DNA from: Podarcis muralis
Lineage: Eukaryota
Reading direction: 5' to 3'
Assembly (NCBI RefSeq): GCF_964188315.1
Contig: NC_135659.1
Location: forward strand, 101,184,001-101,248,000
Length of the DNA: 64,000 bases
Below are positions 7,556 through 59,300 of this stretch, piece by piece. Every line of letters starts with the position of its first letter. Position 1 is the stretch's first letter. Made by a program: the position numbers and the translations under genes. Under the pieces are notes generated by a model. The model was not told where the DNA came from, ran no database searches, and saw nothing but the letters and a program-made list of their open reading frames with translations.

Positions 7556-10000
7556 TGCCGGGAGAAGCAGAGCCCAAAGAGGCACCAATTTAGAGCACAG
7601 GAAGTCACATGGCAGAGAATCAGGCCCCCACCCACAGGGGAATTGAGGCAGGGGTCTTTCTCTTGCTCTCCCAATCTGGAGGTGCTTGAGATTTAATCCG
7701 GAGCCTCTTGCAGGGTCAACCATTGAGCTTCTCCAGTTCAGCTTGCACCATTTGGACACCAATTCCTGCCTCCCCTCCAATTGCACCTTCTGAATCGGGT
7801 TGCAAGGCTGGCCTGGCTATTTTTCCTTTTGTGGGCTGGAGTGGCCTAACTGCTCGGACATTGGGACATCAGTGTGACTCAGCCATCCTGACGGGGTCCA
7901 TAGCCTTCTCTGGGTTCAGAGAAAGCAGCAGACTCCTCTCCTGGCCACATCTTCCCAGGGCGCTCAGCTCCTCAGGTGACCTGGCAGACCCACAGAGGAA
8001 GGCCTTGAAGGGTCCCTGGAGCCCTGGGGAGTTCCAGACACGAGGTGTGGGAGGGTGTTACTTAGGAGTAGCCGGACTACAGCATGGGAAGGGCATGAGA
8101 GAGGACAGTGAAGGGCCGGGGTCCTCGTGGGTTGAGTCCCTGTGCTTCCTGCCCACCCACCCCTTTTCCTGCTTCCAAGCTGGGTCCCACAGGTTTTGCT
8201 CCTGGGGGAGGAGGGGGACCTCAGCAGTGCCCCCCCAACCCTGCCGCTAGCTGGGCTTGGCCCTCCTGCGCTTTGATGAAGGCCACATTGAAGGGGGGGG
8301 GGAGCCCTGTGTGTTTCCACAGCAGGTTGCTTCCCTCCTGCCATTGAAACCACTTATCAAAGCAGCTTCCTCAAAGAGCCTGCCTTCCTTCCTGTCGCCT
8401 CCCAGGCTTCTGATGCGACTGCAAGCACGTCTCCCAGCATGGAAGAAGCCGCAAAGGGCCGGCTCTCTGCCTTCCAGCGGCAAGTCAGCACATAAGGCTG
8501 GATCAGGCCAATGGCCCATCTACTTCTAGAAACCAGCATGGCGTCGTGGTTAGAGTGTCAGGCTAGGGCTCAGGTCAGCAGAGACTAGGGTTCAAATCCT
8601 CACTTGGCCATGAAGCTGACTGAGGGCCTGTCATTGCCCCTCAGCCTAGCCTACCTCACAAGGCTGTTGTGGGGATTACCGTATTTTTCGCTCTATAAGA
8701 CGCACCTTTCCCCTCCTAAAAAGTAAGGGAAATGTGTGTGTGTGTTATGGAGTGAATGCAGACGGGAGGCTCTGTCATGCTCCCTTTAAAGAGCCGCGTG
8801 GAGCATCTGTGCGGCTCTTGGGGGCTTTTCCCCAAGGAGGGACAAGGGATGCCCACACACACTCTGCACGCTCTTTAAAGGAAGCACAGCTCTTGGGGGA
8901 GACTTAGCCACGGGCAGTCTCTCGCGGGCAAGGGATGATGGCTCCCCTTGCCTAGGAGAGGCTGCGCGCGGCCAAGCCAGAAGCCAGGACAGCGAGCCAT
9001 CATCCCCTGCCCGTGCCCATGATATGCTGCCAGTGCCCATGATATGTTTGGGCTGGTATCGGTCTCGTGAAGTTAGCCAAAGCAAAGGGAGCAGAGACTT
9101 TGCTGGTTCCATTATGGCAGTGGTGTGTGGTCAGTGGACTGGGGGACTAGGCCAGTCCCCTAAATGTTCCCAGTAAATTAGAGTATTAAAGTATTAAAGC
9201 CTGGCGCCTCCTTCCCAGTGCCCGGGAAGCTTCTGGCTGGCTTAGGGAGGGAGGAGTGATGCTCACGCGTGCAACGTCACAGGCACGACACCGACGCCCC
9301 CATTGCCCTCGCAAGCTGGCGCCTCTGGCCCTAACTGATCCCCTACGAAAAAATTCACCGCATACCACTGCATGATAGTCCACCTGAAAGGGAGGAGATG
9401 TCATGGGGGCAAACTGGGCTGGGAAACATGAAGGGCACCAAGCGGGCAACGAATGAGAGCAAGAAAGCAGGCCAGCTCCCCAGGCCCTGCAAAGAGCATC
9501 TCTCCCTGTTCTGCTTCTTCCTCATTTTGCTGCTAACCTTAAGAGACAACCCCATCATCCCTCCCAGACTGGAGGTTGGGGCGAAAGGCGTCACTGTGCG
9601 GCTCTGCATTCCAGAGATACCGCTTTGGAGTTTTCTGTGCTGAACATCCTGTGCCTCTGAAATGCTCCCAGGCTCAGCCTCCGATACCCGCCTTTCTGCT
9701 TGGCACCCAAATGCCAGCGCAGGTCCTTGCAGGAGCGACACACCTTTCCTGTGATTCACTGCGGAGGAGGCAATGGGGTGGGAAATCTGCAGGGCTTATC
9801 TTATCCCTCTTTTCTTTCTTTTTTTGCAGCCGGGGACAAAATAAGAAAGAACAGAGCCTCCTTTGAGGGCTCTTGTAGGTCACCATTATTCCCATTTTAC
9901 ACCTGGGGATAATTAAAATGCCTATCTGCCAGATCCAATCATGGAGTTGGAAGGGAACCCCAAGAGACATCTGTGTCCAGGGCAGCTGTCTCCCAGCTCC

Positions 10001-10645
10001 ATCTGGTACGCAGGATGAGACCCTCCCTGCCCGCAGACTGTCTCACCAGAGTGGTGCATGCTCTGGTTATCTCCCGCTTGGACTACTGCAATGCGCTCTA
10101 TGTAGGGCTACCTTTGAAGGTGATCCGGAAACTGCAACTAATCCAGAATGCGACAGCTAGACTGGGGACTGGGAGTGGCCACTGGGACCACATAACACCG
10201 ATTCTGAGAGATGTGCATTGGCTCCCAGTATGTTTCTGGGCACAATTCAGATTGTTGGTGCTGACCTTGAAAGCCCTAAATGGCCTCGGTCCAGTATCCC
10301 TGAAGGAGCGTCTCCACCCTCACTGTTCAGCCGGAACACTGAGGTCCAGCGCCGAGGGCCTTCTGGCAGTTCCCTCATTGCAAGAAGCAAAGCTACAGGG
10401 AACCACGCAGAGGGCCTTCTTGGCAGTAGCACTCGCCCTGTGGTACTCCCTCCCACCAGATGTTAAAGAGATAAACAACAACCTGACATTTAGAAAACAT
10501 CTGATGGCAGCCCTGTTCAGGGAAGTTTTTAATGTGTGACATTTTGATGTATTTTAAATCTTTGTTGGAAGCCGCCCAGAGTGGCTGGGGAAACCCAGCT
10601 AGATGGGCGGGGTAAAAATAATAATAAATAATATTAATAATTATT
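10001..10645 (+). mobile_element. L2 LINE, 5'-truncated ORF2 C-terminus plus 3' tail
   Basis: ORF 9973-10539 with HALVISRLDYCNALYVGLP..KLQLIQNA, typical of L2 ORF2; ends in an (ATA/TTA)-rich tail; close copies at 18429 and 51428. Confidence 0.92.
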
Positions 10646-18428: not shown

Positions 18429-19158
18429 ACTGGACCAGGTGCGCAGCCTGGGAGTCATTTTGGACTCACAGCTGTCCATGGAGGCGCAGGTTAATTCTGT
18501 GTCCAGGGTATCTGTTTACCAGCTCTACCTGGTACGGAGGCTGAGACCCTCCCTGCCTGCGCACTGTCTCACCAGAGTGGTGCATGCTCTAGTTATCTCC
18601 TGCTTGGAGTACTGCAATGCGCTCTGTGTGGGGCTGCCTTTGAAGGTGATTCAGAAACTGCAACTAATCCAGAATGCGGCAGCTAGACTGGTGTCTGGGA
18701 GTGGCTGCTGGGACCACATAACACCGGTCCTGAGAGATCTGCATTGGCTCCCAGTACGTTTCCGAGCACAATTCAAAGTGTTGGTGCTGACCTTGAAAGC
18801 CCTAAATGGCCTCAAAGGCCCAGTATACCTGAAGGAGCGTCTCCACCCCCATCGCTCAGCCCGGACACTGAGGTCCAGCTCTGAGGGCCTTCTGGCGGTT
18901 CCCTCACTGCGAAAGGCCAAGTTACAGGGAACCAGGCAGAGGGCCTTCTCGGTGTTGGCACCCGCCCTGTGGAACGCCCTCCCATCAGATGTCAAAACGA
19001 TAAACAACTACCTGACATTCAGAAGACATCTGAAGGCAGCCCTGTTCAGGGAAGTTTTTAATGCATGACATTTTAATGTATTTCTAATCTTTGTTGGAAG
19101 CTGCCCAGAGTGGCTGGGGAAACCCAGCCAGATGGGCAGGGTATAAATAAATAAATAA

Positions 19159-40100: not shown

Positions 40101-40868
40101 ATGTCCCCTGGCAAGGCCAAAGCGGGGGCCCCCCAGCCGCTGGTCTTCGCAGCCCATGAGATGGAGTGCAAGATCTGCTACGAGAGATTTGACGGGCGCG
40201 GCCGCCGCCCCAAACTGCTGAGCTGCCGCCACCGCGTCTGCGCCCGCTGCCTGCGCAAGATGGTGGAGGTGGGCGAGCCGCCCGGGACCCTCAGCTGCCC
40301 CTTCTGCCGCCAGGAGATGCCCCTGCCGCCGGACAGGGACGTGGGGCGCCTGCAGGACGACGGGCAGGTCCTGGCTTTGCTCAGCTGCCGCGAGAGGGCC
40401 CGGAAGCAAGGAGGGGGCGCCAGGGCCGGGGGGGCGGCCCCCTCCCCGGAGGTGCTGTTGTGCCCCAGCGTCCTGGAGCCCTTTGCAGAGGGCGGGCACA
40501 GCTCCTCCTCGGACTGCCTGGTCATCACCCTCCTGGAGGTGCCCGAGGACATGGCGGCCCCGGAGGGGGTGGGGGTCCTGGACGTCATGCGCCTCTACCG
40601 CCCGCCCAGCCTGGCCTCGCTGCCCTGCTACGGCCCCCTGGGCAAGTGCCAGCCCTGCGCCACGTGGCGCGCCTTTCCGCGCTTCCTGGTGGGTGTCCTC
40701 TGCCTGGTCTACTTCAGCTCTCTGCCCTTTGGCATCTACCTCCTGCTGGTGGAGCGTCTCAACCTGGGCATCGTCCTGGTGAGCCTCGTGCCCTCCACCC
40801 TCATCCTCTGCGTCTTCTACAGCCTCTGCCAGTGCTTCTGCCACGAGATCTTCGACTTGCCTTCTTGA
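40101..40868 (+). CDS. RNF182-like RING-HC E3 ubiquitin ligase with two C-terminal TM helices, 255 aa, single coding exon
   Basis: Branch point CTAAT at about 40035, pyrimidine tract and AG at 40073-74, Kozak GCCGCCATG at 40101. RING ECKICYERF..PKLLSCRHRVCARCL..CPFCR; SSDCLVITLLEV and YFSSLPFGIYLLL..LGIVLVSLVPSTL..CQCFCHE match recalled RNF182 (TSSNCLVITIMEV; YFSSLPLGIYLL; CQCVCHE). AATAAA at 42596 and 42605. Confidence 0.9.
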   Translation: MSPGKAKAGAPQPLVFAAHEMECKICYERFDGRGRRPKLLSCRHRVCARCLRKMVEVGEPPGTLSCPFCRQEMPLPPDRDVGRLQDDGQVLALLSCRERARKQGGGARAGGAAPSPEVLLCPSVLEPFAEGGHSSSSDCLVITLLEVPEDMAAPEGVGVLDVMRLYRPPSLASLPCYGPLGKCQPCATWRAFPRFLVGVLCLVYFSSLPFGIYLLLVERLNLGIVLVSLVPSTLILCVFYSLCQCFCHEIFDLPS

Positions 40869-43869: not shown

Positions 43870-44494
43870 CGTTGTAAACAAAATCTGCCCTTACTCCCTT
43901 ATGGGGGACACAAGAGCCTTTATAGAGTCCTTTGTAGGTTCTCCATCGGTTGGAGAAAATAACAGAGGCCAACCAGAGAATATTGAGAAGCAAAGCGGCT
44001 AGTAAGCCTGATCTTTATTGAACTGTTGCAAGAGGGTGCTCCCCTCACATGCAGGATAAAGGAGGAGGACCCCCGAAACAAAGGTGTGCCTGCCCTTATA
44101 TAGACATTTTAAATTGCCTTCCCTAGAGCTCAAGACCACCCCTCCATACATCATACATACATCACAGAAAAGGTGGTCTACAACAGAAATTTGAGTGTCG
44201 TCGCTTTTCCTGTCTGCCAGGTTATCTGACAATGCCTTATCTGATTCCCTATCCTGGTAGTCTGGCCATTCCTTTGAGATGGTAATCACTTAATTCCTGA
44301 GACAATGGGAAGGTTCCCTCACCCACTCCCTCCTTGCAGAGAAAACATTTGGTCAGTTTGGGAGTCAAAATGGTTTCAGGGCGGTCTTCCTGTGCTGCTC
44401 CAGACATGTGGTCCCCATATCTATGTACGTGCTTGGTTAGTACATTTATGAACATTTATTATATATAAAAGACCTTAATTTTTTTATCTCAACT
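43870..44494 (-). mobile_element. Solo LTR, copy 1
   Basis: Homologous along its length to 62138-62807; minus-strand TATATAA (44102-44096) and AATAAA (44019-44014); termini decayed. Confidence 0.7.
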
Positions 44495-44816
44495 TGGAAG
44501 GAATCCCAGGGGTCATCCAGTCCAACCCCGCGCAATGCAGGACTCACAGGTAAAAAATCCCTGGCATGTGGCCACCCAAACTCTGCTTGAAAAACAAAGG
44601 AGAGTCGACTATCCCAGCTACTTTCAACTGTATTCGCACGATGTTCTTGTCAGCCCCTCTGGGACCTGAGGCTGAAGGACAGGCGAAGAACAAGAACAAC
44701 AGCAGCAGCTCTTCTCTTCCGCTTCCCCACCAGCCAGACAAGCCTTTCCAGGGCTCCTCCTTCCCTAGCTGGACAAAGGGGTCTCCTCTCACCCCATTTC
44801 GATGCCCTGCAGCTTC

Positions 44817-47800
44817 TCAAAGAGCCCCCCTGCCGGGCTGGGCACTGGTGGCCAGTTCAGCCACACGCCAGATCTTGGGCTTGGCGGGCAGCTCCTGCGC
44901 CTCAGCAGTGGCTGGCAGAGGAGATGGAGGCAAGCCTTGCCACCGCCCGGCCTTCAGCCAAGGGGCCGCTGTTTCTGCCAGAGAGCCATTCTGGGGGAGC
45001 TTTGTCCTCGTCGGAGGGGTGCTGGGGGCTGCTCTTTCTGCGCCGGCCTCTCCCTCGCTGTCCTCCTCTTCCTCCTCCACCTCTCCCTCGGCCTTCGGGG
45101 CCCGGGGCGCCCAGCAAGCCCGGTTCTCCTTCTTGAGCCTCCGGCGGGCGTTGGCGAACCAGGTGGAGACCTGCGTCAGGCTCATCCGGCTGACGATGGC
45201 CAGCAGCACCTTCTCCCCCTTGCTGGGGTAGGGGTTCTTGGGGTGCTGGCCCAGCCAGGCCTTGAGGGCCGCCGTGCTCTCCCGGGAGGCGGCCGCCTTG
45301 CCCCGCGACGGGTCCTCGGGGGTGCCTGGCCGCAGGAGGGGCGAGTAGAGCAAGGGCGCCGGCCACAGCAGGGGGGGTCCGCCAGGCAGCTCGCAGGGGG
45401 CGGCAGAGACCTGGAGCACACAAAGGCAAGAGCAGCTGTGAGAAGCAGGAACCCCAAACAACTCCGGGTGTTGCAGGAATTTATGTATAGGTTGGGGGGG
45501 GCATTGCCCCTCCAGCAGATATCATGCACATGCAGCCCACTACCAATATCAGCACAATCACTTTTGTGATTTGTCCCCACAAAACACTCCATCACCGTTT
45601 CTTCCTATCTATTCAAAGGGCCTCTGCTGCACAATACCAAATGTAAGAATTCACTGATCAATGTATCTCTGTACTGGCTCACTGGGAAAACTTCAGAAAT
45701 TCCTATAGACATGTGAGCTCAGCTCCTCAGCAGCCCCTCTGCCTGAGGGATAATCCCTGGCATCCTGATACCTGAGTGCCAGACAGGTAGCCATTCCTGA
45801 ACTAACAAACCCAGGTGAAGACCAAAGGGTGGGATTAACTTGGCTGGGAAACAGGGAAATGTAAAGATCTCTTTTGCTCCACTTGATGGGTGTTTGGTGG
45901 AGGGCAAGGGGAACCATGGGGCAGGGTCCAGGATGCTCAGATTCCTGCCACCAGACCTCCCCTTTCATGATGTAACCATGATGTATGAGTGATGTAGTCT
46001 GGGGGGTGGGTGTAACATGGGGATTAAAAAGGTAAAGGGACCCCTGACCATTAGGTCCAGTCGTGGCCGACTCTGGGGTTGCTCATCTCGCTTTATTGGC
46101 CGAGGGAGCCGGCGTCCAGCTTCCGGGTCATGTGGCCAGCATGACTAAGCCGCTTCTGGCGAACCAGAGCAGCACACAGAAACGCCGTTTACCTTCCCGC
46201 CGGAGCAGTACCTATTTATCTACTTGCACTTTGACGTGCTTTTGAACTGCTAGGTTGGCAGGAGCAGGGACTGAGCAACGGGAGCTCACCCCATCGCAGG
46301 GATTCGAACCGCCGAACTTCTGATTGGCAAGTCCTAGGCTCTGTGGTTTAACCCACAGCACCACCTGCGTCCCACAACATGGAGATTAGCAGCTAATAAA
46401 AGTTTGGGGGCTCTTTTGTTGGGGGCTTCCATCTCCTTCCACCTTGTGGCAGGTGGGAGTCCTGTCTCGACTGTCTTCAATCAAGACCAAGCCTACTGGC
46501 TGCTGTTTTGCTCTGGTATTCCTGGCTGGTGTCCTTGTTTTTGGTCCAAGGGAGCCCTCAGATTTCTCCGTTAACAGGGAAATGTTGGCTCCTCCAGTCT
46601 GCTCTGGCCCCCTGCATACTCCCCCACATTTCGGGAGGGCAAATTGGGGCACACCCGCACCATCCTGCCACCCCTGTCACTTGCCTGCTCAGCCCCAAGA
46701 CCACTGCCCACCCAGCCCCTCCCTTACCTGCCTGCCCCCTTCACCTGCTGCCTCCTGCCGCTGCCACTGCAGCCTCCCAGAGGTGTTTTGGTCCCACCCT
46801 TTGATGATTCCCAAAGCGATCCCGGAAGGCTCTCTGGTGCTCGCCAGCACAACCCTGCTGACTCGCGCCAGGGTGCCCGTCTTAAACAGGACATTCCGGG
46901 ATCCAAGGCAAAGCCAGAATTGGCTTTTGTGATCCGGGATGCCCTGCTTAAAACAGGACACTTGTCCCTGCTAGAGGAAAGAAGCATGCCTGGATGCAGG
47001 CTGAGTCAACGACAGAAGCCTGTACAGAAGAAAGAGACAGAAATTGAAGTGTGCTTGAAATGTGGCCCATGCAATGGAAACCTGCTCCACCCTGAAAGCA
47101 AAGGCAAGCAGAGAAAGGTTGTGGCATATGGGACGTTTTGGAGAAAAGGCATGATGGAAATTAATGGATGCTTTCTCTGCCCTCCTGAGTGGGGGTCCAT
47201 CTGTCCTGGAGGGCATCCCTCTCCCCCTAAAGGATGTGGGGTGCTCTTGGGTCCAGCCTTGCCACTGGGGCTGCAGCTGCCCTCAAGGACCTCGGGGTCC
47301 TTTCATCAACTTTGACCTCTGCACCAACCCTGGCTCTACCAGGACAGAGTTTGTTCTGGTTATTCACACTCTGGGCCCCTCCTGCTTGAGTGGGGCGGGC
47401 AGAGCTTTGCGGATGGTGCTGCCACATTTGCTGAGGTCGAGAGGCGGGCACTGTGCCCCCAAGGGGCTTTGCTTCTTCAGCTCTGCTGCCTCCTCTTGTT
47501 TTCTGCTGCTATTTTTAGTCCCATCCCAGCGTTTCTCCTGCCTCCCAGAAAAGGCCCCTTCCCTGTCTGGTTGAGAAGCCACCACAAGGACTCCCGCTCT
47601 GCAGATATTTTTAAACATCTCCAGACCAGAGAGAGGAGCGCCTGTCATGCAGCCCAGGGCTGGGAGGAGCGGGCTTGAGCTGCGTCGATGCCAGCCTGCC
47701 CACTGTGCCAGGCTGTGTACGTTTGCCATCCTGCGTTTCTTCTTGCCACAAGGGTGGCTTGCCTCCTCCTATAGCCCCTCAAATCATAGCTGTCAACTTT

Positions 47801-48139
47801 TCCCTTTTCTTGCGAGGAATTCTATTCGGAATAAGGGAATTTCCCTTAAAAAAAGGGAAACATTGACAGCTATGCCTCAAATGGGGGGGAACTTGGCGCA
47901 AAGAGAATTAGGACAGAGAACATGAATCCCAGGCAGAGGCAGGACTCAGGAATGGGACACCTGTGCTGCATGCAGAAGGCCTTTCTCCCCATCCCTAAGA
48001 ACTCATGAGGAAGATCTCTGGAGGAAGCTGGGGTGGGGAGGAGGTTTGGGACAGTCCTCTTGGTCTCTGGAGGGGGTGATGGCACAAGTTTGGGAGGGTC
48101 AGTCTGGATGATGCCTTGACTCCCTTCCAGCTCTGGGGA

Positions 48140-48187
<48 letters not shown>

Positions 48188-50373
48188 TAAAGGGCATGAG
48201 AGCAAGCTCCCCCAACTAGGTAGTGAATTTGGCTGAGCAGTTAAGCATTGCAATTAGTACAAGCAAAGAAGCTGCTCTGTGCCTTCGGGCAAATGGCCAT
48301 TGGGCCTCCCCCCCCCCCCCCCCCCCGGCGGCTAGGAAGAAGCAGGCTGGAAGCTGGAGACACAGAGACATCTCCAAATATCTGAAGTGCTGCTGTTCCA
48401 TGCAAGACACAGAAGCTTGATTTTTTTTCTGCTGAGGACCAGGAACAACAGATTCAAATGACATGAAAAAGCCATTTGACAGAGGAGCGGTCTCCCTTGG
48501 AAGGTGGTGGACCAGGGGTCAGGGGGCTGGACTATATTTGGGGGGGGGGGATGAAGGAATTCTTATACACCAAAAATAACCCAGAGATGCATTTTAAATA
48601 AAAGCACACATTCTACTCATGTAAAAAGACGCTGGTTCCTGGAGCGTCTGCAGGCCAGATTGAGAAGGCGATTGGGCCGGATCTGGCCCCCGGGCCTCCC
48701 CATGTGGTGGACTCTTTCTTTGGAGGTTTCTAAGCAGAGATTGGATGGCCATCAGTCATGGATGCTTCAGTTGTGATTCCTGCATTTCAGGGGGTTGGAC
48801 TAGATGACCCTCAGGGTCCCTTCCAACTCTTCCGTTCTATGATTCTATGAAGGGAACTCGTGAGGGCGTCTCCTGCAAGCCAGTCTGACCCCACCCTTGC
48901 CCGCACCCCACCTGAGATCTGGTGCCAGTGGCTGCCTGGCCTTTGTTTGACAACCTGCCCCCCAACGGCTGGCCCCATTGCTCACCCGCCCCCCCCCCGG
49001 CCTGCTCTGCCTGCCTGCTACCTTCTCCCCTGAGCAATATTCTCCCCATAAGTTCCTTCTCCTCACGCTTGGCACCCCCCAGCCACAGGTAAGCAGCTCC
49101 AATGAGCTCCCACCTCAGAACTGATGGAGATTTGCCAGGTAGGAACACAGAGACATGGGATGCTGGCTTACATGGGTGTAGCCAGGAGTTTTGTTAGGGG
49201 GTGCAGAACCTCAGTTAGCTATGCATTTTTATTGATTTAGGGGGGGGCAGCTGTCCCTCCCTCCCCCCCCCGCTACGCCCATGCTGCTTTACACGGAGAC
49301 ATTGGTCCAGCTTTCCCAGTATTGTCTGCACTGGCTGGCAGCAGCTGTTGAGTTTTTCAGGCAGAGGTGCCTCCCAGCCCTGCTAGGAGATGCCGTTGGG
49401 ATTTGAACTCAGGACCCTTTGCCTGCAAGGCAGATGCTCCACCAGCTGAGCTGCAGCCCTTCCCCAAACGTAGGAGTTCTATTTTGAGGCCATCGATGCC
49501 TGAAAACCTTCATGAGCCTTGCATCTATTTCAGAAGGGCCAAAAGGAAGGAGTCCAGGACTATGAAAAGAATTATTAGCCAAGGACAATTAAATGTAATA
49601 TAGAAATTAAGAAATGCAGAATAAGTGATAAAGAACAGAAAAGCATCAGAGGCATTGATGGAAGTCTAAAACATTGTTTAAGATGAGAAGATATGTTGTA
49701 TGGCTGTTGGAAGTGATATGTTAAAAAATTTAAAAAATGCATATATATAAAAAGAAAGGAGTCCAGAATGGACACATGGAAACAAAAAACGCCAGACGGA
49801 CACATTCGGAAAGAACAAAAGAAGTCTGGTGGGCAGTTAATCTGCGGGACTCCCTGCTGTTTGGTTGCTGGCGCTGTTAAAAGAGGAGGAGAAAGGCAAG
49901 TGAATTCTTTTATGATTCCAGCAAGTGTGTCACTAGCCTGAGGGCTGCTGGAAGCAGTAAAGCGCAGAGGACCTGAGTGGTCCTGGAAGCTTTTCAGCAC
50001 CAAAAGTTACACCTTCTCCCATGCAACTGAGAGAGGGAGAGAAGAGTCTCGCCTTCAGAAGGTGTTTGGCCCAGCCAGTCCCACCCATCTTTCAAGCCCC
50101 CAGGGGCTCACCTGGGCCCAGCCCCTCGCTCACCTCAATGCAACATAGAACGCCCCCCTCCATGCCCCCCCAGTGCCTGGAGTCACTTACCGGCTGGGCG
50201 AAGAGCCCCAGGGGCGGTGGCTGCAGCAGGCTGTAGCAAGGGAGAGCAGGGTAGGCGCAGGGCAGGTGGGGCAGCAGAGGGGGCAGGGGGGCAGGCGGGG
50301 CCCCTAGGGGACACCAAAAGCCCTCCGCATCCCCACTGCCCACAGGCGTCTCTTGGGAGGGTGCTGAGGCCAT
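44817..50373 (-). CDS. IRX7: Solitary Iroquois-class TALE homeobox gene, irx7-like, two exons, 258 aa
   Basis: Exon 1 50373-50191 (MASAPSQE...[23 protein letters not shown], donor GTAAGT, phase 0). Exon 2 45410-44817 with homeodomain [55 protein letters not shown], an acidic tract and IRO box [31 protein letters not shown] and KKENRACWA resemble recalled zebrafish irx7 (AEDPGRVAK..RESTSALKAW; KKENRVSWA) more than Irx1-6. Irx family certain; irx7 orthology is inference. Confidence 0.85.
46027..46375 (+). mobile_element. Full-length Sauria/POM SINE in the Irx intron
   Basis: Head AAAGGTAAAGGGACCCCTGACCATTAGGTCCAGTCG; near-TSD AACATGGGGATTA / AACATGGAGATTA. Confidence 0.88.
49171..49283. mobile_element. 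Small hAT-type MITE in the Irx intron
   Basis: TIRs CATGGGTGTAGC / GCTACGCCCATG; decayed 8-bp TSD CTGGCTTA / CTGCTTTA. Confidence 0.6.
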
Positions 50374-50419
50374 GCTGTGCAAGAGTGGCTCTGGGGCGGG
50401 AGAGGCTGCGCTTGGGGGA

Positions 50420-50425
50420 TTTATA
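50420..50425 (-). promoter_or_regulatory. TATA box of the Irx gene
   Basis: Minus-strand CCCTATAAATCC; the TATAAA ends 47 nt upstream of the ATG at 50373. Confidence 0.7.
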
Positions 50426-51427
50426 GGGGCAGAGAGGTGAAGGGCAGTTGATTAGGGGCATTAGCAGACAGCGGGCACAGCTTACTTTAAAGGGGCAGCG
50501 TCAGGATGCTGCAGTTGGAGGAGCAGAGCCTTGTGCCAGAAGCTGGATTCTCACTCGCCGGAGCGGCTGCCTTTGCCACACGTCCTGGAGGGGTTTAAGG
50601 ACCCCCATCGCAGCCCCCTCCCTGAGCTCATGCCTGGTTACAGCAGAGCAGGACTGGGGTGGGGGCTGCTCTCTTTCCCCACAACAAAGCACTAGGAAAC
50701 GATTAGATGGGCACAGGATATTGGCTGCCCAATAATGATGACCAAATGGGAAAATCTTTGGAGAACAAATATGAAATGTATGGCGTGTCAAGGAAAATAT
50801 GTTAAAGATGCAGCATGGATGGTACCTCACCCCCTCAAGACTATCTAAGATGTACAAAAATTTAGGTACTAGGAAACCTCTGGGTGCTCCAGGCCTGGAG
50901 AGGTGGACAAAGAACCTCGTTTGGACTGCGGTTCCCCTTCTAAGTCTTGGCTAAAGAGCATGCGCAGAGTGCTACTCCCTCGTTGGTGGAACAGCTGCAT
51001 TGGGTCCCCAGCTGAGTCGCACGGTGGTCATGGGGGCAATTCACTTCCAGGCCAATGAGATGTAGTTTCGAAGGAGGTTTGGGCAGGTCTGTCTGCATGA
51101 TGCCCCGAGTCCCTTCCAGTCCTGGGGGTCCTGGACGCAGGGAGGGTTAGAATCTAATGGGGGATTCTATCGTTAAACTAGTCAGACAATTTTATTTTGG
51201 TAAGACAATGTCCTTGGCTGGCCACTTAAGTGTCCTCATCCACATCCCAAAAGAATGAGTCAGGTTGCAGGAGCCACAACTAAGGGATGGGACCTTCCAG
51301 GCTAACAGGTGGGCCTTTCCTTCACCACCCCTCCTACCTAGCTGCCAGGTATAGGAGAACAAGACCCTGAGAGTTGAGCAAGAGCTGAGCTGGAGACCCA
51401 GAGACCTGCTTGCTCTGTGCTGGATCC

Positions 51428-52043
51428 AAAGCTGAGACTACGCAGGATGAGACCCTTCCCGCAGACTGTCTGGCCAGAGTGGTGCATGCGCTAGTTATCT
51501 CCCACTTGGACTACTGCAATGCACTCTATGTGGGGCTACCTTTGAAGGTGACCTGGAAACTACAACTAATCCAGAATGCGGCAGCTGGACTGGTGACTGG
51601 GAGCAGCCGCAGAGACCGCATAGCACCGGTCTTGAAAGACCTACATTGGCTCCCAGTACGTTTCCGAGCACAATTCAAAGTGTTGGTGCTGACCTTGAAA
51701 GCCCTAAATGGCCTTGGTCCTGTATACCTGAAGGAGCATCTCCACCCCCATCGTTCTGCCCGGACACTGAGGTCCAGTTCCAAGGGCCTTCTGGCGGTTC
51801 CCTCACTGCGAGAAGCCAAATTACAGGGAACCAGGCAGAGGGCCTTCTCGGTGGTGGCGCCCACCCTGTGGAAGGCCCTCGTCAAAGAGATAAACAACTA
51901 CCTGAAATGTAGAAGACATCTTAAGGCTGCCCTGTTCAGGGAAGTTTTTAATGTGTGACATTTTAATGTATTTTTAATCTTTGTTGGAAGCCGCCCAGAG
52001 TGGCTGGGGGGACCCTGTCAGATGGGCGGGGCACAAATAGTAA

Positions 52044-56378: not shown

Positions 56379-59300
56379 TAGATAGATAAATAAATAAATA
56401 GATAAAATAATTAATAAAATAATATTATACCCTGCCCATCTGGCTGGGTTTGTGCAACTGGTTGTGCAACTGTGGTGCCCCCCACCCTGCTCCCACTTGG
56501 GCCCCCATGTTAAGGGGAGCAGCTCCACGCTGAAGCTGCAATTCCAGCCCTGGATGGTGCAGGACGCCCCCCCCCCCCAAAAAAACCACACCTATGGTGT
56601 TGCCCTTGTCTACTCACAGGGTCTACTCACATGCTTCGTGCAGAGGGGTCAGCATGGGAGGAGGAAGAAGGGGACATTTAGGGGAACCCCGAACACCTCC
56701 TCTCTCCCCAGGATTCGGGGGGGGGGCAAGCCCGCCTTGCTGCGCAGCCCCCTTCTCCCAGCCCTGCAAGGGACTCACCGCTCGCATGTTGACGTCGGCC
56801 CCGGCCCCCAGGAGGAGGGTCACCAGCTCCTCCTTGCCGTGCTTTGCTGCCCAGTGGAGGGCTGTCTGGGGGGAGAGCGCAGGGGGGTCACCGGGGGGAG
56901 CCTTCCTCCCCCCACCCAGCAAGAAAGAGGCAGCCCCCCTTCTGCCCACCCACTGAACCTCCCAGGAGCAGGAAAGGACGGAGGCTTGCTTCACACACAT
57001 CAGAAGAGCCTCCGGATCAGGCCCCAGGACCCTCTTCTCACAGGAGCCAACCAGAGTGTGGGGGGTCAGGTGGGATTGCTATGAGGAATTATGAAAAATG
57101 CAGCAAGCCATGGTGTCCGCGATGAAAGCATTGCTTGACTGGGCTTGAGTCACTGGCAATAATTTCTGATCAAATCCCACAAGCCTCTGCATCTCTGCCC
57201 CATTTTCTCCACCTGACAGGCATGTATAAGCATTCTGAAACACAGACCAGTTGCTTCACCATTCATCCTGGGCCAGAAAGATAGGAGGTAGATGTTGTTA
57301 ATCTTTAGGTAGATCTTAAGGGCCAGGAAGAGAGTTCACAAGGAGATGGTAAACACTATCTTTCCTTGCCTGTCCTTCCTTTCCTATTTACTGCCTGTTT
57401 ATGACCTCTGGGGTTTGCTAAATGCATTCCTCCTTGATTCCTGTTTTATGCATGCTCAAAGTAGTTATTTGCAGGATTTCTCTGATCTGACTTTGTCCCA
57501 TGTGGTAATTTTTTGAAATGCTCACAGGAAATCTGATTGGTTCGTACAAGTGCTGTGTAAGAGTTCTTTTAAGAGTTAATAAAACGGTTTGGACGAAGGA
57601 GTGGCTATTGGCCCTTCCTCCCAGAGTCTTGCTGGCCAAGCCTGGTGTGTATTTTATTAATCAGGGTCCAATCCTTCCTTTGCCTTCGGAACGCAACACA
57701 GGGGCCCGTCAGGGGAACCCCACAAGCAGTGCTCTCTCCTGCAGAGCCCTCCTCACTAGGAGCCCTTGAAAGCCCTCCGGTCCTCCCTGCCTTGCAGGCC
57801 TTTTCAGGGGCCTGGACTGACTCCAACTGCAAAAGCTGGGCTGGGCTGGGCTTGGGGTTTTTCTGCTGGCGGACAGTTGCTGCTTTGTATCTTTATTTTA
57901 GATATTACGATTTATGTGAAGATTGTTTAACTTGGTTGTGCACTTTTTGATATTTTATTTTTTGTTCATGACTACTTCTGCCATGTTTGTATTTCCGTCC
58001 CCCATCCCCCCCCCCTTGTAAGCCGTCTTGAGCACAGTTCTAACTATGGAAAGGTGGCATGCAAATAAAATGTGCCATATCGGTGAGCGGCTTACACTTA
58101 ATCCAGTGGGAGGGAGTTCCATAGTTTAACTCCACAATGTGAGATGAAGGATTCTGGGGAGGAGAAGGGGGCATTTAGGGGTAAGGGGAGGAAATCAGTA
58201 GTTGGGACCAAATACTTACAAACTGTGTCAGGTCAGGCAGCAGCAGCAGCAGCAGCAACCGTGGGAGAGAAGAAGAGTCATTAAAATCCCCACCCAGGAG
58301 AGACTCCAGTTCCCAGGGAGAACCTCCCCCCCCCCAAAAAAAAAGACGGTGGGAGGCTGTGGGGTGGGGGGGGGTCACAAGCAGAGAGCACCCCAAACCG
58401 AAAGAGGGGCAGTGTGCCAGGCAGGTGGGTGGCATTGGCGCTGGGTCTCAGAGACAGTGCCCATCAGGAAGGCAGACAGCCTGAGGCAGAAGGGACCCCC
58501 CCCCCAGAGCTACGCCAAGGCGACCTGACCCACGTGGGTCTAGACTTACCCCCTGAGCAGAGCGGGAGGAGAAGGGACAGGCGGCAGATTTGGCAATGGG
58601 GGAGGGAAACAGAGAGAAGGGAGCGTTAGAGCCACGCGGTGCATCCTGAAGCCCTCTGAACATGTGCAGAGTGTCACACCCACAGCCGGCACTCACGCAC
58701 CCGGGGCTGCAGTAGGGATCCCCCCCGATGGCTGGGAGGGTGGGGGGCAGAAACATTACAAGGGGATTTGGGCCCCCCTTCCACAAAGGACCCCAAGAGG
58801 AGGAAGATGTGGAGGCCCAACATGACCCTGCCGGGAGTCACAGGCTTAGAATTAAAGCACAAAGCGCCCCCCCCCTGTCTGCAATGGAGACCCCATTCCA
58901 GGGGGGAGCACCTGCCTGAACGGGGCCCCGTCTGCCAGGCTCACCCCCCCCCCCAGGCCTCAGCCCCCTTCCTGACCAGGTGAGACATGGTGGCTGGGGG
59001 GCAGCTGACCCAATTCTGCACTCTCCAGGTGAGGGAGGGCTGGCTGGCGGATCCAGGACCGCCGGCAATGTCTGGGCAACACAATGACCATGTACATATG
59101 CAATAAACGATCTTTTATAGAATTCCTTCAAACCATAACATTGCTGACGTTCTCGTTGCAACACAGGGGCTGGTTTGATCCAGGACCGCGGCTGCTTCTT
59201 TCCAAAGCTCCTTTTGTGTGGGCTCAGCCCCCCGAGAAGTCTTGGGCTCCCAAAGAAGAACATGAGAAGAGGCTGCAGGATCAGACCAGTGGCCCACCTG

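Follow-up and report, generated by a model that had tools for sequence, protein, structure and literature searches.

An irx7-type Iroquois gene beside Sowah in the lizard Podarcis muralis and its probable place in a seventh Irx lineage of jawed vertebrates

A window of 64,000 nucleotides (nt) from the lizard Podarcis muralis (contig NC_135659.1, positions 101,184,001 to 101,248,000 of the forward strand) was analysed, and a two-exon Iroquois gene with a predicted product of 258 amino acids (aa) was identified on its minus strand. Our analysis suggests that this is very likely a functional protein-coding gene, the P. muralis orthologue of fish irx7, which encodes a short TALE-class Iroquois transcription factor. 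Orthology to irx7 is proposed because of the phylogeny, the position of a phase-0 intron, the microsynteny with Sowah and a set of shared derived residues. Positions below are those of the window, unless a contig is named.

Tetrapods, birds included, are described as having six Irx genes, with irx7 as an isolated gene of zebrafish (PMC12702339, 2025). The gene has been called a teleost-specific duplicate (PMC10161429, 2023), and six Irx genes were assigned to the osteichthyan ancestor (PMC2674049, 2009). No report of an amniote irx7 was found in the searchable literature. What is new here is the recognition of the gene and its correct orthology and not a new kind of gene, because the gene is already present in public annotation under misleading 'IRX-n-like' names.

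Phylogenetic analysis

A total of 65 proteins and 274 alignment columns were used for the careful tree, which was built with IQ-TREE under the LG+C20+F+G4 model. Vertebrate paralogues were represented by mammal IRX2, catfish Irx5b, alligator IRX3, shark Irx3a, Chaetodon Irx1b, fish Irx4a and Irx4b and hagfish genes, and the invertebrate outgroup by spider, crustacean, mollusc, tunicate, brittle-star and midge genes. The names given to these outgroup and paralogue clades follow the source annotations.

The careful tree revealed an irx7 clade of 30 rows with support of 100/99, made up of chondrichthyan, coelacanth, lungfish and ray-finned fish genes and 13 sauropsid genes, with one copy per non-duplicated genome sampled. 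The short Irx genes of skate, elephant shark, coelacanth and lungfish fall in this clade with fish irx7. Chondrichthyans branch first within it, then coelacanth plus lungfish, and then ray-finned fish and sauropsids. All 13 genes from sauropsids form one group (100/100), which divides into squamates on one side and turtles plus birds on the other, matching the species tree. The irx7 clade is sister to Irx1/3 (94/67), followed by Irx2/5 (98/94) and then by Irx4. It was also found in a quick tree of 108 rows, with a value of 98 in the Shimodaira-Hasegawa-like approximate likelihood ratio test.

Two constrained arrangements were compared by the approximately unbiased (AU) test. Placing the sauropsids with coelacanth plus lungfish, which is the species-tree arrangement, was not rejected (p = 0.31). 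Forcing them to group with Irx1/3, away from fish irx7, lowered the log-likelihood (lnL) by 23 units (p = 0.038).

The original prediction, made from the letters of the window, had described the gene as an irx7 orthologue and irx7 as an older vertebrate paralogue and not a teleost novelty. Both claims are supported by our analysis, through the clade at 100/99 with its chondrichthyan, coelacanth, lungfish and sauropsid members, the shared intron, the presence of Sowah upstream in pike, lizards and turtle and the diagnostic residues. The Podarcis gene does not nest inside Irx1-6. Irx7-type genes are present in skates, a chimaera, lobe-fins and ray-fins, and this distribution points to an irx7 lineage older than the divergence of cartilaginous from bony vertebrates. 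The lineage may have originated by vertebrate whole-genome duplication and the gene may be a remnant of a lost cluster, as the original prediction also proposed; the sister relation to Irx1/3 stands at only 94/67.

Gene structure and diagnostic residues

The gene model is given below, with coordinates, strand and description.

50425 to 50420, minus strand: TATA box (TATAAA), by direct reading, 47 nt 5' of the ATG, kept in Zootoca and Pogona
50373, minus strand: ATG start codon, by direct reading
50373 to 50191, minus strand: coding part of exon 1, 61 codons (MASAPSQ...GLFAQP), donor cagccg/gtaagt, phase 0
50190 to 45411, minus strand: single intron, 4,780 nt, phase 0
45410 to 44820, minus strand: coding part of exon 2, 197 codons, acceptor ctccag/gtc, with homeodomain, acidic tract and IRO box
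44819 to 44817, minus strand: stop codon tga, at the end of exon 2
44455 to 44460, minus strand: first putative polyadenylation signal 3' of the stop codon, from a motif scan, with a second at about 44019

Both exon boundaries are in phase 0. A single phase-0 intron occurs at the homologous position in all seven genes checked (skate, pike, seahorse, Amia, Pogona, Corvus and Podarcis), and in irx7 it sits three to four residues before a (F/Y/C)(D/E)L(K/P) motif. Zebrafish irx7 likewise has two exons; it encodes 314 aa and lies outside the clusters, and Irx1-6 have four to seven exons (PMC12702339).

The first exon of our model, at 50373-50191, is regarded as the conserved one because the annotated Pogona protein begins with the same exon, an intact orthologue is present in Zootoca (L005:7384-7566, 88.5% aa identity, with start codon ATG and gtaagt donor unchanged), and its motif C/GYSLLP.PP can be aligned with exon 1 of irx7 in skate, lungfish and fish. 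The residues encoded by exon 2 match the NCBI product of P. muralis LOC144327878 at 100%.

The intron is 4,780 nt long in Podarcis versus 2,542 nt in Zootoca, with about 86% identity where the two align. Two stretches of the Podarcis intron, at about 45469-46576 (about 1.1 kb) and about 48939-49808 (about 0.87 kb), have no counterpart in Zootoca and are probably lineage-specific insertions. The gene had been called compact, which holds for its coding part and fails for its intron (4.8 kb here, 2.5 kb in Zootoca).

Analysis of the protein alignment revealed residues that are shared by irx7 and the sauropsid genes and set them apart from Irx1-6. MSLTQV occurs in place of the MTLTQV of Irx1-6 and (G/A/S)ALKAWL in place of TLKAWL, and the N-terminal arm of the homeodomain is without the 'RKN' of Irx1-6. 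Many irx7-type genes also have H-L-K in contrast to the H-R-K of Irx1-6, and S-W in contrast to T-W after the homeodomain.

These results bear on the idea that the Podarcis gene is a sauropsid-specific, fast-diverged duplicate of one of Irx1-6, for example Irx3, which merely resembles irx7. Such a duplicate would suit the NCBI names, in which the sauropsid genes are IRX-1-, -2-, -3-, -5- or -6-like, and trees can be misled by long branches and biased composition. Nevertheless, the clade joining the gene to fish, shark, coelacanth and lungfish irx7-type genes at 100/99, the 23 lnL units lost when sauropsids are forced with Irx1/3 (p-AU 0.038), the irx7-type intron, Sowah linkage, MSLTQV, ALKAWL and N-terminal arm without 'KN', and the location of the gene outside any IrxA or IrxB cluster make a sauropsid-specific Irx1-6 duplicate very improbable, and irx7 orthology is preferred.

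Protein domains

Three elements of the Irx family were identified in exon 2.

45311 to 45123, minus strand: TALE homeodomain of 63 aa (PSRGK...NPYPSKGEK...; WFANARRR), Pfam Homeobox_KN, E = 6.8e-15
45089 to 45048, minus strand: acidic tract, from the translation, aligned with the acidic region of other irx7 proteins
44882 to 44844, minus strand: IRO box, matching the KPKIWSLAETATS motif of fish irx7 and Irx1-6

The homeodomain carries the three-residue PYP insertion of the TALE class between helices 1 and 2 (NPYPSKGEK), and its closest solved structures are the TALE proteins TGIF1, PKNOX1 and MEIS. The recognition helix, with alanine at position 50, is identical to that of all retrieved Irx1-7 and invertebrate Irx sequences. 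The homeodomain departs from the Irx consensus at about 10 of its 63 positions. The TATA box, two exons, TALE homeodomain, acidic tract and IRO box that had been claimed for the gene were all found where they had been placed.

A six-frame scan of the window identified this TALE homeodomain only, in agreement with the earlier statement that no other Irx gene lies between it and its neighbours. With one homeodomain in 64 kb and a position outside the Irx2/5, Irx1/3 and Irx4 clades, the gene does not belong to IrxA or IrxB. A Pfam search of nine long open reading frames (ORFs) of the window found no domain; these ORFs are spurious products of GC-rich DNA.

Conserved synteny

Three further genes of the window were used for the comparison of neighbourhoods.

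63101 to 52942, minus strand: intron-containing Sowah (ankyrin) gene, with Ank domains and exon matches to Sowah of Pogona, turtle and pike
40101 to 40868, plus strand: single-exon RING-finger gene, 255 aa, with a RING domain, convergent with the Irx gene
27610 to 32303, plus strand: 3' exons of PCIF1, matching exons of the PCIF1 gene calls of Pogona, turtle and crow

An Ank Pfam match lies at 56773-56883 in the Sowah gene, and a PCIF1_WW match (1.1e-14) lies at 29669-29845. Both neighbours named in the original prediction, Sowah and an 'RNF182-like' gene, have counterparts here, the second being recognised by its RING domain. The order Sowah (same strand), Irx, RING (opposite strand) and PCIF1 is found in Podarcis, Zootoca, Pogona and Chelonia, and the RING gene holds the same position in these species and in Corvus. 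A large zinc-finger gene lies 5' of Sowah in Pogona, and the wider sauropsid block reads ZNF(335-like)-Sowah-Irx-RING-PCIF1. The crow has a zinc-finger gene, Irx, RING and then a gene whose exons match the PCIF1 exons of the window. No Sowah was called in crow (Corvus hawaiiensis, contig L004, 1-10977) between the large C2H2 zinc-finger gene and Irx, and in birds the Irx gene may have been kept after its linked Sowah was lost or relocated.

The fish loci were seen over 10 kb. A WHD_SOWAH/ankyrin gene lies directly upstream of pike irx7 (contig L008) on the same strand, and its exons match the Sowah exons of the window. Downstream of irx7 a TNFR gene is found in pike and seahorse, in contrast to RING and PCIF1 in sauropsids. 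The suggested synteny between fish and lizard was recovered on the upstream side, as Sowah on the same strand in pike, and not on the downstream side within the 10 kb covered. Apart from the TNFR gene of seahorse, no informative neighbour was found within 10 kb of the skate and seahorse genes. The gene cd40 lies near PCIF1 and ZNF335 on human 20q13, and the fish TNFR gene may be cd40.

Comparison of the two neighbourhoods raises the question of hidden paralogy, in which the sauropsid gene and teleost irx7 would both be ancient and would descend from different duplicates, for example two extra Irx-Sowah blocks. The grouping of sauropsids with ray-finned fish (88/53) and not with coelacanth plus lungfish, the different downstream neighbours (TNFR in pike and seahorse, RING and PCIF1 in sauropsids) and fish loci in which, over the 10 kb covered, pcif1, znf335 and pltp were not seen could all be read in its favour. 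Against this, the species-tree arrangement is not rejected (p-AU 0.31), all members fall together in one clade (100/99) in which each non-duplicated genome sampled has only one copy, Sowah lies directly upstream in the same orientation with matching exons in pike and sauropsids, and the position and phase of the intron are identical. Hidden paralogy is consequently considered improbable, and a single irx7 lineage shared by fish and sauropsids remains the favoured reading.

Copies of a transposon-like ORF (...LDYCNALYVGLPLK...) were observed at 51410-51958 (plus strand), 18466-18822 and 9961-10293, and they also match an ORF beside pike irx7. One copy of this LDYCNALYVGLPLK ORF lies between Sowah and the Irx promoter.

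Selection and sequence evolution

Comparison of the coding sequences of Podarcis and Zootoca gave a synonymous divergence (dS) of 0.150, a nonsynonymous divergence (dN) of 0.028 and a ratio of the two (omega) of 0.19; this dS is about equal to the divergence of the aligned intron, about 14%. There are 15 nonsynonymous and 26 synonymous differences, and 74% nonsynonymous is expected under neutrality (binomial p = 6e-7). The homeodomain has no nonsynonymous and six synonymous differences between these two lacertids (p = 2e-4). For Podarcis and Pogona an overall omega of 0.26 was obtained, with 0.09 for the homeodomain. The Podarcis gene is under purifying selection.

The sauropsid path from the base of the irx7 clade is about twice the coelacanth or pike path in the careful tree, and the Podarcis gene is very GC-rich, with 81% GC at third codon positions (GC3). 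Because omega is low and the homeodomain has no amino acid change between the lacertids, its unusual residues are fixed and now conserved states, not signs of ongoing decay. Overall, the data point to fast, compositionally biased change along the sauropsid lineage followed by purifying selection; they suggest GC-biased evolution, adaptive change or both as its source. Of the earlier proposal of relaxed or altered constraint, the relaxed part is not supported, given the omega of 0.19 and the unchanged lacertid homeodomain. The gene is intact and constrained in relatives, and disruption in close relatives, which had been named as evidence against the original prediction, was not observed.

Expression

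Sequencing runs of several studies that were guessed to be RNA hold 9-18% of the sampled words of 44700-50500, which is roughly the exonic fraction. In the exon 1 region (49950-50460), of which exon 1 makes up about 40%, runs of one study guessed to be RNA hold a share of 0.15-0.36 of the words, and runs of another study guessed to be RNA hold none of them. This pattern fits, and does not prove, a spliced, condition-specific mRNA that includes exon 1. Two Logan contigs were considered as spliced transcripts and were rejected: upstream of exon 2, L010 (from a bird) continues unbroken into the intron, and L011 represents genomic DNA of another squamate, in which the intron is short. Splicing is seen in neither.

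The selection and expression results also address whether the gene is a decaying relic, with a frame open by chance, relaxed constraint and transcription only as read-through from Sowah. The departure of about 10 of 63 homeodomain positions from the Irx consensus, an older annotation in which Sowah exons are fused to exon 2, RNA-type runs that lack any exon 1 words, and snake orthologues that are very divergent and in which a motif search found no IRO box are what such a relic might show. A relic would not, however, be expected to have an omega of 0.19 (p = 6e-7), a homeodomain without amino acid change between Podarcis and Zootoca despite a dS of 0.15, and a conserved TATA promoter and exon 1. 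Intact frames are moreover found across lizards, turtles and birds, lineages that by established dating last shared an ancestor more than 250 million years ago. We therefore give decay very little credence and retain the view of a functional gene.

Promoter and public gene models

Alignment of the promoters of two lacertids (Podarcis and Zootoca) and an agamid (Pogona) revealed that all three share the TATA box and two motifs upstream of it.

50485 to 50492, minus strand: promoter motif CTTTAAAG, identical in the three species
50445 to 50458, minus strand: promoter motif CCCCTAATCA(A/G)CTG, a TAAT core with an E-box-like element, kept in the three species
46573 to 46629, minus strand: alternative first coding exon (MWGSMQGA...) of the current NCBI model, inside the intron

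From its conservation, a function in the promoter may be presumed for the CCCCTAATCA(A/G)CTG motif. The current NCBI model encodes 232 aa and starts in the small intronic exon 46629-46573. The older NCBI model is an ankyrin-homeodomain fusion of 304 aa, in which Sowah exons (63101.. and 56814-56782, minus strand) are spliced to Irx exon 2. In Zootoca the MWGSMQ sequence runs without a break into exon 2, and in Podarcis the 1.1-kb insertion lies between the two. The exon 46629-46573 was rejected as a conserved start on the ground that it is mere intron sequence contiguous with exon 2 in Zootoca; it probably reflects an open frame that runs on from exon 2 into intron sequence and not a conserved exon. 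The fusion model is either an annotation artefact or a reflection of real read-through transcription from Sowah into Irx.

Relatives in other vertebrates

Similarity to the Podarcis protein is 100% in P. muralis, 89% in Zootoca and 66% in Pogona, and the search further identified relatives in turtles, birds and fish, the last named 'iroquois homeobox 7'. The sauropsid matches are 170-340 aa long and come from lizards, snakes, at least ten turtles and birds as diverse as Rhea, Struthio and passerines; in databases they are labelled 'IRX-1/2/3/5/6-like' or 'uncharacterized'. Hundreds of fish matches, gar and reedfish included, are named 'iroquois homeobox 7'. Among cluster representatives, irx7-like homeodomains were found in skates, Callorhinchus, Latimeria, Protopterus, reedfish, sturgeons and Amia. 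Mammal, amphibian and crocodilian proteins were not among the irx7-type matches listed, which is no proof of absence. A protein atlas search returned generic Irx clusters only, without taxon range.

Several groups showed deviations of their own. The snake orthologues (P0049, P0122 and P0178, from Crotalus and snake-like sequences) are extremely divergent, with an end branch of 2.05 and LAVLSQRSLSQV as helix 2 of the homeodomain; a motif search found no IRO box in these three, and the constraint on them may have changed. Bird proteins (P0029, P0035 and P0060) are only about 210-230 aa long, and their IRO box, KPKIWSVAEMLES or KPKIWSVAAMLAS, is partly degenerate. Turtle models (P0007 and P0110) have a wrong N-terminus, the ORF running into the intron 5' of exon 2.

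Additional copies were observed in some fish. Amia calva has two tandem irx7 genes 3 kb apart (L009:5471-6797 and L009:10001-11265), whose first exons and homeodomains are identical and whose C-termini differ. The pair was considered as a remnant of an ancient irx7 cluster and was rejected as such; because the first exons and homeodomains are identical, it is either a recent tandem duplication or an assembly duplication. Pairs of irx7 copies on the same contig were also found in sturgeons, which are already polyploid. The irx7-like genes of the elopomorphs Megalops (P0262) and Aldrovandia (P0153) form their own clade beside standard teleost irx7 (99/98) and are possibly retained copies of the teleost duplication.

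Discussion

The Podarcis gene resembles teleost irx7, such as zebrafish irx7 (iro7), in its two exons, in the position and phase of the intron, in its short protein (258 versus 314 aa), in the MSLTQV and ALKAWL of the homeodomain, in the acidic tract and IRO box and in its clade. It is also solitary with Sowah upstream, as in pike, and teleost irx7 lies outside the four teleost Irx clusters. Unlike teleost irx7, the Podarcis gene has about 10 homeodomain substitutions, a shorter C-terminus, with the protein stopping soon after its IRO box, and a GC3 of 81%; the sauropsid path in the tree is about twice that of fish or coelacanth, and the downstream neighbours are different. Irx1 and Irx3 belong to the same family and form the closest paralogy group (sister, 94/67), and the irx7-type homeodomains of shark and skate closely resemble Irx3. 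In contrast to Irx1 and Irx3, the Podarcis gene lies outside a three-gene cluster, has Sowah, RING and PCIF1 as neighbours, is about half as long and has two exons instead of four to seven (PMC12702339).

Some of our observations weigh against an irx7 orthologue that is functional and has the two exons described here. The rejection of the Irx1/3 alternative by the AU test is only marginal (p = 0.038), the sauropsid sequences are long-branched and deviant in composition (GC3 81%), and the Irx1-6 outgroup set came from one similarity search and was without a verified Irx6, tetrapod Irx1 or tetrapod Irx5. The careful tree joins the sauropsids to ray-finned fish and not to lobe-fins, with weak support (88/53), and the quick tree put them inside teleosts, next to seahorse; the latter placement is treated as an artefact of long branches or composition, because the careful tree removes it. 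The NCBI models, one with the alternative first exon and one with the Sowah-Irx fusion, disagree with the two-exon model, and the evidence for expression consists only of word shares in runs guessed to be RNA.

We consider it highly probable that the Podarcis protein is a functional transcription factor. The gene would be transcribed from its own TATA promoter, and removal of the single phase-0 intron would join its two exons. With its intact Irx-type recognition helix the product most likely binds DNA, and it would act, like other Irx proteins, as a regulator of developmental patterning, with the IRO box and the acidic tract as presumed protein-interaction and regulatory modules. By analogy with related genes, predictions can be made of its DNA target, of the tissue and stage of its expression and of its developmental role. 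Its roles may perhaps overlap those of zebrafish irx7 in the hindbrain boundary, retina and joints (PMC12702339, PMC10161429), although we rate this somewhat below an even chance.

The arrangement of the locus is that of the bilaterian Iroquois-Sowah block, with an Irx gene directly beside an intron-containing Sowah in the same orientation. Maeso et al. in 2012 reportedly described the ancestral Irx-Sowah arrangement in invertebrates, teleosts and elephant shark. The linkage has been summarised as dismantled in tetrapods, with the parental Sowah lost from Irx loci (PMC5803294, summarising Maeso et al. 2012). Unlike that summarised tetrapod state, the linkage persists in lizards and turtles. 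The seventh Irx lineage, closest to Irx1/Irx3, would have stayed next to the intron-rich Sowah, and irx7 would have survived in sauropsids (lizards, snakes, turtles and birds) between ZNF335-like and PCIF1. It is a tentative suggestion, with the odds against it, that sauropsids retain a working form of the ancestral bilaterian block, in which a seventh Irx gene is served by enhancers in Sowah introns. If this were true, the 'dismantling in tetrapods' would be limited to the IrxA and IrxB loci, to mammals and possibly to amphibians and would not extend to all amniotes, and an Irx gene absent from mammals would take part in the patterning of some tissue in birds and reptiles.

Overall, our results indicate that irx7 very likely represents a gnathostome-wide seventh Irx lineage, closest to Irx1/3 and kept under selection in lizards, turtles and birds, and that the linked, intron-rich Sowah still adjoins it in lizards and turtles, contrary to the summarised loss in tetrapods. 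The history of gene loss in a major family of developmental regulators would be revised accordingly. The phenotypes of zebrafish irx7 would gain a bearing on amniote models, among them chick, quail and Anolis, and sauropsids versus mammals would offer a natural comparison for the loss of one Irx gene together with its regulatory block.

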